A stretch of 63,854 nt of DNA, filler included, from Bigelowiella natans CCMP2755 (lineage: Eukaryota > Protista > Cercozoa), in the NCBI GenBank assembly GCA_000320545.1. It is 9 parts of 9 records of this genome, joined end to end, with 100 filler letters (N's around TTAATTAATTAA, not from the genome) between each part and the next. Parts side by side here need not be neighbours in the genome. Positions count along the whole stretch, not along the records: positions 37,331 to 54,244 come from ADNK01002870.1; 8 more parts are not named here. One strand, given 5' to 3'. Each line of letters opens with the position of its first letter. Position 1 is the first letter of the stretch. Below are positions 44,255 through 46,076 of this stretch, one piece after another. Under the pieces are notes generated by a model that was given only the letters and a program-made list of their open reading frames with translations, was not told where the DNA came from and made no database searches. The position numbers and the translations under genes were made by a program.

Positions 44255-45415
44255 ATGGGGGCGAACTTGGCCAAAGCAGCCAACGATGCAGTGATCAACA
44301 AAGATTGGTATAGCAAGGTGCTCAAGCTGTTGTCGAAGCGTGTGGACCTCGAGAAAAGAAGCGGATCCAGAGACGACACTGCGTTGATCACAGCATCTCG
44401 TGTGGCTCACCTGGCCGTTGTTGTGAAGGCGCTGTTGGAGAAAAAGGCCAACACTGAAGCCGCCAACAAATACGGTGAAACTCCGTCATACGCAGCGTCT
44501 TTGGAGGGTCACTTAGACGTCGTGAAGACACTGTTGGGGAAGAAGGCCAACAGTGAAGCCGATGATAAATGCGGTCGGACTCCGTTGATCGTGCTAGCGT
44601 GGCATCCAAAGGAGGTCACCTGGCCGTTGTGAAGACGCTGTTGGAGAAGAAGGCCAACACTGAAGCGGTTGATGAACACGGCCGGACTCCGTTGTGCGTG
44701 GCATTTGATGGGGGTCACTTAGACGATGTGAAGACGCTGTTGGAGAAAAAGGCCAACACTGAAGCAGCCAATGAAAACGGTGGCACTCCGTTGATCTTGG
44801 CGACCATGGGAGATCACCTGGCCGTCGTGAAGACGCTGTTGGAGAAGAAGGCCAGCATCGATTTCGCTGATTGGAGCCGAGTCACTGCGTTGGATCATGC
44901 AAAAATGAGGGGCTACACAGAAATCGTTGACCTTTTGCAAGAATTCTTGCTTGAAAAAAGAGATGCCCAATTGCTGGAGGCGTCTGACAAGGGTCATTTG
45001 GACGTCGCAAAGTGGCCATTGGAAAACAAAGGCCGAACAGAGGTGACGAATCGATCAGGTCGGACTCCGTCAATGGTGGCGTCTTTTGGGGGTCACCTGG
45101 ACGTCATTGAGATGCTGTTGGAGAAGAAGGCCAACATCGAGACGACCGATGAATTGGGTGACACTCCGTTGTGCTCGGCATCTTCGGAGGGTCACCTGTT
45201 CGTCGTGAAGAAGCTTCTGAAATGGAATGCAAATTCCTTCATCTGGGTGAAGGGTGCAGAAGGGATGGATGACTGCGCTGGAACGGGCAAAAAAGAAAGA
45301 TCACACAAAAGTCGTTGACGTTCTGAAAGCGACTCCCTCCATTCGCAGCAAGGATCTTGTCCATTCCAGCACTGCTGGACTGTGCGACACAGGTGCACAC
45401 CACTGGACCAATTGA
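44255..45415 (+). pseudogene. Intronless ankyrin-repeat pseudogene with two insertion frameshifts and TA->TG/CA hypermutation
   Basis: Repeats of TPL..AS..GHL.VVKTLLEKKANTEA; removing 8 bp at 44594 and 10 bp at 45255 restores one frame. Confidence 0.9.
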
Positions 45416-45616
45416 CGCCACATGGCATGATGGTGTGTCTTTGTGCACGCAATGATGAGGCGCTGTGCCAGGCCAATGAAGAGTCTCATTGTTTTTTCCC
45501 CTGTGCCAGTGTGGCATCACGTTGTTTGATGATCACGAAATTGATGTCTGCAAAAATGAACAAACGAGCAAACAAAAAACCACCCAAGCTTGTTGCGAAT
45601 TCCAATGCTGGGATGC

Positions 45617-46076
45617 ATGGCTAGACGGTGCGATCCACAGCTAGACGGCAGCCACATTCTGAACACATCAATGATTGCATTGTGCACCTAGAAGCGCCAT
45701 GCATCTAGGCATGCATGCTAGCTCATGGCTAGATGGCCACGTAGATCTAGAGATGCATGGCTCATGCGGATGGCACACATTCATGCAGACATGACTAGAT
45801 GAAGCGCGCTGCCGCCATGCCATGATGTGGCATGTGCAAATGAATGAATGCAGCTGCACGCCGCAGTCATGCATGCGCGCAGGAAACAATGAATGAATAA
45901 AGAGCATCCTAGCATCGCATGTTGCTCTGGACTGCTCTAGTACTAGACTGGTGGATAGCAAATTTACATGTTGGGTATTGCAGATCCATCAGTTTAAATT
46001 GCACATCTGTATGAACACACACAAGGGTGTACGTGCACACGTACCACGCTAGCACGCTCAGCGCTGTGCTAGTGAG
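45617..46076. other. Cluster of XXXX-CTAG-XXXX insertion scars
   Basis: 13 CTAG in about 455 bp; 6 flanked by exact 4-bp direct repeats, 3 by 3/4 matches. Confidence 0.9.

Follow-up and report, generated by a model that had tools for sequence, protein, structure and literature searches.

What could strip a gene of nearly all its TA dinucleotides and, at the same locus, leave it broken by a short insertion centred on CTAG? The question is raised by an ankyrin-repeat gene of the chlorarachniophyte (rhizarian) alga Bigelowiella natans CCMP2755, which lies in a window of 63,854 nucleotides, filler included, assembled from nine parts of genome assembly GCA_000320545.1 joined end to end. All of our results rest on one of these parts, the 16.9 kb piece at positions 37331-54244 (ADNK01002870.1), with positions counted along the window. 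In this piece, insertions of eight base pairs with a common anatomy occur far in excess of chance, TA has been lost around the ankyrin gene at the level of the dinucleotide itself, and the centres of several of the insertions have been converted. We consider it probable that the gene is an intronless pseudogene marked by two processes, one leaving 8-bp transposon footprints as scars and the other purging TpA locally to TG and CA; the transposon origin of the scars and the enzymology of the TA change are what we infer from these patterns.

An ankyrin-repeat reading frame and its two breaks

The ankyrin open reading frame (ORF) begins with an ATG at 44255 on the plus strand and runs in frame 1 to 44593, in frame 3 from 44602 to about 45262, and again in frame 1 to a TGA at 45413-45415. 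Its first piece (44255-44593), comprising the ATG, an N-terminal cap and repeat units as far as TPLIV, matches the Pfam family Ank_2 with E=7e-12, and the middle piece (44602-45262), which holds about six 33-residue units, matches it with E=5.5e-35. The last piece (45271-45415) is read from its translation as the final TAL...VVDVLK cap, followed by a tail and the stop codon. All three pieces are thus ankyrin repeats or ankyrin caps, and the scores of 120 bits for Ank_2 and 107 bits for Ank lie well above the respective cut-offs of 27.3 and 21.1. Six of the units measure exactly 99 bp each, with a mutual identity of 52-79% in the unit alignment. The ORF is intronless across 1.15 kb, while the neighbouring genes are split into short exons. 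At its N-terminus, the sequence MGANLAK (44255-44275) fits a loose N-myristoylation consensus, with Gly2 and a small residue at position 6. Just upstream of the ATG stand two direct copies of an element of about 55 bp (44113-44165 and 44183-44239), each with the inverted repeat GCGACA...TGTCGC; a TCAG/TTAG change and a 4-bp indel distinguish the two.

The first break, at 44590-44601, reads CGTG-CTAG-CGTG, a 4-bp direct duplication around CTAG. The repeat unit that contains it measures 99+8 bp, therefore eight bases are extra, and because eight bases were added the frame shifts by +2, from frame 1 to frame 3. The preliminary description of this locus, which was made from the sequence alone, had identified the same structure as the first frameshift and had concluded that CTAG and the duplication were inserted. 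Our analysis bears this out: the insertion is strongly supported, because the reading frames differ by exactly eight bases and because the structure N4-CTAG-N4 recurs 17 times in the piece. A tiny intron across the break was considered and rejected, as restoring the frame would take a length of 2 modulo 3, which none of the GT..AG intervals at this place has.

The second break, which is absent from the preliminary description, lies at 45263-45270 and is a 4-bp tandem duplication, GGAT-GGAT, whose four extra bases return the reading to frame 1 (a shift of +1). The piece contains 64 plain 4-bp tandem duplications, no excess over the 56.6 +/- 7.3 of shuffled sequences, so this break is probably an ordinary small duplication, and we rejected it as a second type of footprint. 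The 11-mer GGATGGATGAC, which includes the tandem duplication, is found both at this break (45263-45273) and near the 3' end of the transcript of the ADP-ribosylglycohydrolase (ARH) gene discussed below (51263-51273).

Two variant 8-bp scars, described below, lie in the C-terminal tail of the ORF. No gene on record carries the product of the 249-amino-acid ORF; the best homologue returned by a protein search with the ankyrin ORF was 44% identical, and a scan of metagenome and MMETSP contigs gave no locus above 33%. Neither the proteins searched, MMETSP transcriptomes included, nor the contig scan yielded a transcript-derived protein of the gene. On the basis of the two frame changes, the two further scars in the tail and these searches, in which no intact product was found, the ORF is treated here as a putative pseudogene.

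Scars of the form N4-CTAG-N4

The insertion at the first break is one member of a class. Exact 4-bp direct duplications flank 17 of the 84 CTAGs of the piece on both sides. Shuffled sequences give next to none of these structures: dinucleotide-preserving shuffles contained 0.18 on average and 2 at most (n=300), and shuffles within 300-bp blocks contained 0.28 on average and 3 at most (n=500). Other non-repetitive 4-bp centres are flanked in this way six times or fewer each, and a signal was seen only for the combination of a 4-bp flank with a 4-bp centre, with none at other lengths. In control eukaryotic contigs, exact flanks were found for 0 of the 49 CTAGs of contig L001 and for none in L002-L004 or L007, and contigs L005 and L006 held one case each, of low complexity (AAAA-CTAG-AAAA). 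A further 12 CTAGs of the piece match at three of the four flank bases, where about 3 are expected, and look like decayed scars. Some scars are nested and can be peeled off stepwise, as in CATG-CTAG-CTAG-CTAG-CATG at 50985.

The scars are also unevenly distributed along the piece, since 15 of the 17 fall within two intergenic clusters that together cover 17% of its length (p=2e-10). Cluster 1 (45621-46070), 3' of the ankyrin ORF and rich in GCATGC, contains 13 CTAGs, six of them with perfect 4-bp flanks (12-mers starting at 45701, 45725, 45743, 45791, 45905 and 46045), and others that match at three of four flank bases. Cluster 2 (50220-51075) lies 3' of a minus-strand gene encoding ARH and ZnF-UBP domains and contains 32 CTAGs, with nine perfect scars. 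Within the clusters, the density reaches about one scar per 50 bp. Isolated scars were seen at 38677-38688 (CAGG-CTAG-CAGG) and at 40392-40403 (AAAG-CTAG-AAAG). Empty sites, as reconstructed from the scars, are weakly biased towards palindromes, the first duplicated base being A or C in 18 of 21 and the preceding base being A in 1 of 21.

Two further observations concern the arrangement of CTAGs. Short (CTAG)2-4 arrays occur at 42635-42649, 50879-50890, 50911-50925, 50988-51005, 51033-51048 and 51067-51074, and could be scars within scars or slippage of the palindrome. The scars at 44590-44602 and 46044-46057 are exact reverse complements over 13 nt, 1441 nt apart, with the 4-bp target in opposite orientation. 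We therefore considered the 20-nt inverted pair at 44583 and 46044 as the boundary of an element, and rejected it as two scars that share a 4-bp target in opposite orientation; the pairing is judged a coincidence because the ankyrin register runs unbroken across 44594.

A duplication of fixed length, at an arbitrary target and around a constant short remnant, is what a transposon footprint consists of, and it is found here 17 times against 0.2-0.3 expected. The scars are probably owed to a cut-and-paste DNA transposon that makes a 4-bp target-site duplication and whose excision would leave N4-CTAG-N4. The flanks would retain bases of the element ends, either CT..AG or a self-complementary CTAG overhang, and these would rejoin cleanly, giving a uniform scar. 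One such scar would have landed in the ankyrin ORF and shifted its frame, and others would have accumulated densely in the two intergenic clusters; the further frameshifts of the ORF would be owed to the 4-bp tandem duplication and to two older scars in the C-terminal tail.

Known elements offer partial parallels. Excision of Tc1/mariner-type elements such as Sleeping Beauty leaves a TA duplication together with three terminal bases, C(A/T)G, and the scars resemble these footprints in being small, uniform, frameshifting insertions with a target-site duplication around a few constant bases of the element ends. They differ in duplicating an arbitrary 4-bp sequence rather than TA, in leaving the palindrome CTAG as remnant and in being very dense, and no parent element was identified. 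Systems with such canonical footprints were all that the literature searched for parallels yielded. In piggyBac excision, 4-nt TTAA overhangs re-anneal to restore a single TTAA, with a fixed target and no scar. The model proposed here would share with piggyBac the 4-nt stagger, the self-complementary overhangs and the uniform repair by ligation only; unlike in piggyBac, the target of the scars is arbitrary and 8 bp are left behind.

Alternatively, the N4-CTAG-N4 structures may not be transposon footprints, and may instead reflect, for example, repair of breaks with a 4-nt stagger using a fixed filler, or seeding and slippage of (CTAG)n. The short CTAG arrays at 42635, 50988 and 51033 would suit such an origin, as would the lack of a parent element in the piece and the fact that the literature we searched describes no footprint of the form N4-CTAG-N4. 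However, slippage leaves the flanks unduplicated, and fill-in of staggered breaks is expected to produce plain 4-bp tandem duplications, which are not enriched. What defines a target-site duplication with an element remnant is a constant filler between two copies, fixed in length, of an arbitrary sequence, and both the intergenic clustering and the weak palindromic bias of the target fit a transposase. We therefore regard an origin without a transposon as unlikely, though it keeps some weight.

Loss of TA and its direction

Within 44600-45620, the core of the TA-poor domain, TA occurs twice where about 60 occurrences are expected, an observed-to-expected ratio (o/e) of 0.03, and TG and CA stand at 1.67 and 1.32. 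The dinucleotides other than these three range from 0.74 to 1.33, and the TA o/e in the rest of the piece is 0.86. The two survivors in 44598-45620, at 44720 (TTAG) and 44914 (CTAC), are those named in the preliminary description, and the next TA belongs to the CTAG at 45621-45624. The TA-poor zone measures 1.3-1.7 kb in all and is centred on the 3' two-thirds of the ankyrin gene and its 3' flank. To the left of the core, the depletion is milder (o/e 0.38-0.48 over 43800-44599); to the right, TAs outside CTAG stay rare up to about 45900.

The loss extends to positions that a choice among codons does not govern. In the ankyrin ORF, T|A spans a codon junction 2 times where 22.3 would be expected (p=7e-8); the corresponding figures for the neighbouring gene are 21 and 26.4. 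Because the junctions are depleted, codon choice does not explain the loss of TA. Three homologous ankyrin coding sequences from other organisms have TA o/e values of 0.53-0.92, and 200 bp of non-coding DNA past the ankyrin stop codon contain no TA. In the core, the TA deficit of about 50-58 and a CG deficit of about 10 roughly match the TG+CA surplus of about 61. The TA change is limited to a domain, nearly saturating, specific to a dinucleotide and present on both strands, a pattern like that of repeat-induced point mutation (RIP).

The preliminary description had deduced that TA changed to TG and CA by comparing the repeats with one another. The codons it quoted are indeed present (aaaTACggt at 44468, aaaTGCggt at 44567, gaaCACggc at 44666, ggcTACaca at 44911 and gatCACaca at 45299), as are TPS with a TCA codon at 44486 and 45070 and TPLC twice against TPSY once. 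As a proof of direction, the comparison does not hold, because the units are old and dissimilar, their ancestral states are not known, ankyrin repeats in general vary at the Y/C/H position, and TG and CA can also arise from CpG. Its strongest item is the pair of Ser-for-Leu changes in the conserved TPL motif, both of which use TCA, one step from TTA and two from the TTG of other units. The direction itself is probably right and is supported by four other lines of evidence: the variant scars, the balance of deficit and surplus, the codon junctions and the profile reversions. To call this pseudogene the best internal proof, as was done, overstates what a single locus can offer.

The scars test the direction better than the repeats do, because the state in which each scar was born, CTAG, is known. 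Three variants with intact flanks lie in and just behind the end of the ORF: ACTG-CTGG-ACTG (45371-45382), whose centre is one TA-to-TG step from CTAG, ACCA-CTGG-ACCA (45399-45410), and TGTG-CCAG-TGTG (45502-45513), whose centre is one TA-to-CA step away. When all 12 one-step variants of CTAG were searched for with perfect 4-bp flanks, CTGG and CCAG were each found three times, CGAG and ATAG once each and the other eight not at all. With about 0.2 expected by chance for each variant, only CTGG and CCAG are enriched. Together, their six scars compare with 0.72 in block shuffles, none of 500 of which reached six. Three of the six lie inside the TA-free interval 45331-45620, against an expectation of 0.014 there, and a count of three was not reached in any of 5000 shuffles. 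Intact CTAG scars start abruptly at 45621.

Further support comes from a 33-column ankyrin profile built from 148 repeats of homologues. Of 42 non-synonymous reversions of TG or CA to TA, 15 improved the profile score by more than 1 bit; among matched control changes, G to A or C to T outside these contexts, 22 of 134 did so (odds ratio 2.8, p=0.015). This test is supportive only, because the ankyrin units are not independent. Taken together, in situ change of TA to TG and CA is the best reading of the domain, and we hold it to be likely.

The scar centres also bear on a proposal in the preliminary description that CTAG or half of it protects a TA. The data do not support this, as conversion reached the centres of scars too, and no significant preference for a context was seen among the ten TAs outside CTAG that are left in the domain, half of which lack both a C on the 5' side and a G on the 3' side. 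As for the intact CTAG at 44594, it belongs to the margin of the domain, in which about one third of the TAs survive, and this scar need not postdate the purge. Behind the ORF, the motifs AATGAA and (AATG)n occur at 45474-45479, 45556-45561, 45839-45852 and 45888-45903 and adjoin one intact AATAAA; speculatively, they are what AATAAA and (AATA)n would be expected to become under a change of TA to TG.

In the model that we favour, nearly every TA across some 1.3-1.7 kb would have become TG or CA through T:A-to-C:G transitions at TpA on either strand, and the same change would have converted the CTAG centres of older scars to CTGG or CCAG. Candidate causes would be a base modification or deamination directed at TpA, or a biased repair of T:G mismatches. 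A TpA-directed modification of thymine or adenine that leads to mispairing is one such candidate, for which 5-hydroxymethyluracil at TpA in dinoflagellates may be a precedent. In the literature searched, we found no description of TpA hypermutation for any eukaryote.

Several known processes resemble parts of this pattern. RIP, known from fungi such as Neurospora, replaces C by T within CpA and thereby generates TpA. It shares with the ankyrin domain the confinement to a domain, the near-saturating and dinucleotide-specific transitions on both strands, the graded edges and the pseudogenes produced, but here TpA is destroyed and the host is a rhizarian alga. RIP itself was rejected, as its pattern is the opposite, raising TpA, which here is nearly gone; with regard to the duplications on which RIP acts, the only ones seen in the ankyrin region are the internal 99-bp repeats. 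One-strand A-to-I hyperediting of the ADAR type, fixed through a retrocopy, was rejected because TG and CA are both in surplus and CTGG and CCAG centres are both present; such editing would moreover have a relaxed preference for U or A as the 5' neighbour, and AA is not depleted here (o/e 1.33), with AG low at 0.74. No depletion of AA, TT or AT was seen, which led us to reject both WA hotspots of the polymerase-eta type and a general GC-biased conversion. Methylation and deamination of CpG produce a surplus of TG and CA and appear active in both scar clusters, where the CG o/e is about 0.6, but that process cannot remove TA. In the ankyrin zone, the CG o/e is 0.80-1.0, and within 44600-45620 the CG deficit of about 10 falls far short of the TG+CA surplus, so the signature of CpG decay is lacking there and is partly present in the clusters. 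The closest described outcome is that of very-short-patch repair, which has been proposed to turn CTAG into CCAG in enterobacteria by correcting T:G mismatches to C:G (PMC4687349). The result, CTAG to CCAG or, on the other strand, CTGG, is the same; that system, however, is the bacterial Vsr/Dcm, tied to CCWGG and acting genome-wide, whereas here all TpA contexts are affected, within a limited domain, in a eukaryote.

A different account would make the poverty in TA compositional: a TA-poor 99-bp ancestral unit with codon bias would have multiplied next to a 3' regulatory flank of the GCATGC type, and CTGG and CCAG would be alternative excision footprints. We observed stretches that are rich in GCATGC/TGCATG and poor in TA and CpG 3' of three stop codons, at 39735-39900, 45600-45900 and 50200-51100, following an NHL-repeat gene (plus strand), the ankyrin gene (plus) and the ARH/ZnF-UBP gene (minus), respectively, with CTAG scars in two of the three; they may represent a shared composition of 3' ends or of intergenic regulatory DNA. 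The common ancestry of the ankyrin units would also favour a compositional origin, as would the CpG decay that feeds TG and CA in the clusters, where CG/TG and CG/CA differences between flanks are seen. By contrast, the junction depletion is independent of codon choice, and the units have diverged by 21-48% with almost no TA having arisen. The 200 bp of TA-free non-coding DNA past the stop are not rich in GCATGC, the variant scars lie where TA is absent while intact ones set in abruptly at 45621, and both the match of deficit to surplus and the profile reversals would be unexpected. We accordingly find a purely compositional explanation rather improbable.

Some observations weigh against the combination of transposon footprints and TpA purge. 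The GCATGC-rich, TA-poor stretch after the NHL-repeat gene is without scars, and since such stretches follow other stop codons, motif content may account for some of the shortage of TA behind the ankyrin ORF. Codon counts such as TTG in 22 of 47 are not independent, as the ankyrin units share descent, and no paralogue or orthologue by which to polarise the substitutions was found by the protein search, in the records or in the contig scan. The CTGG and CCAG centres could be alternative footprint or repair forms rather than mutated CTAG, and among the flank mismatches of decayed scars ordinary CpG decay is as frequent as TA changes. The 16.9 kb contain no intact element that is bounded by CTAG or CT..AG and has both 4-bp duplications and inverted termini; CTAG-bounded pairs with matching 4-bp flanks and inverted termini were only chance pairs inside the CTAG clusters. 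We know of no transposon superfamily that leaves an N4-CTAG-N4 footprint. The reading frame of the ankyrin gene is the only proxy for an empty site, the MMETSP transcript L002 covering no scar, and no scar is covered by an independent assembly or transcript; the whole sample, moreover, is a single piece.

That the breaks are errors of assembly or sequencing in an intact, functional gene is very improbable: although the locus is without independent confirmation at the level of reads, 8-bp insertions with an exact local duplication are not known to arise in base-calling, the N4-CTAG-N4 structure recurs 17 times, nested and partly decayed, at least two further frameshifts are present, no transcript-derived protein of the gene was found and no frame-restoring GT-AG interval surrounds the scar.

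Neighbouring genes and implications

The piece is eukaryotic nuclear DNA. Its ORFs are short, GT-AG introns some 340-410 bp long lie between exon fragments, and microsatellites of the (TA)n, (CA)n and (GA)n types are frequent; an Rfam scan gave no match. Its ARH/ZnF-UBP gene runs on the minus strand from about 53654 to 51316, with GT-AG introns of the same length. The exons are 98.7-100% identical in nucleotide sequence to transcript L002 of MMETSP (JGI sample 3300017095), and the nearest named relative of the protein is from Lotharella oceanica, at 72% amino-acid identity. Transcript L002 keeps the last intron of the gene (51266-53654, minus strand) and differs from the genome mainly in the lengths of (CA)n, (GA)n and (TA)n microsatellites and by a few single-nucleotide polymorphisms, one of which is CGT/CAT (Arg/His). 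Other exon fragments encode a weak NHL repeat (39211-39717, plus strand), a transglutaminase-like core (40890-41363, minus strand; Pfam E=4e-18) and a SPRY domain (53727-54242, plus strand; E=5e-9).

In the literature searched, neither the class of scars nor the purge of TpA appears to have been described. If the scars are transposon footprints, they record visits of an element at a density that has rarely been documented and with an unusually uniform repair product. They would then document in nature where insertions took place in the past and, besides causing frameshifts, would supply intergenic DNA with new short motifs. Each scar, being born as CTAG, provides a built-in test site for later mutation, and the converted centres in the TA-free domain point to a transition process directed at TpA, none having been described for eukaryotes in the literature searched. 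In its fullest form, the finding would amount to a domain-limited, TpA-specific T:A-to-C:G hypermutation in a chlorarachniophyte nuclear genome, resembling RIP in pattern but opposite in chemistry and direction. Beside it, a highly active cut-and-paste element would have left uniform footprints of the form N4-CTAG-N4, thousands of sites of known ancestral state from which the genome would directly reveal the rate, context and domain structure of the process. This we put forward tentatively, as rather less likely than not. What is at stake is whether the TA-poor domain reflects a hypermutation akin to genome defence, a bias of repair or a local oddity, and since rhizarian genomes are poorly explored, either outcome would inform our picture of their mutational landscape.

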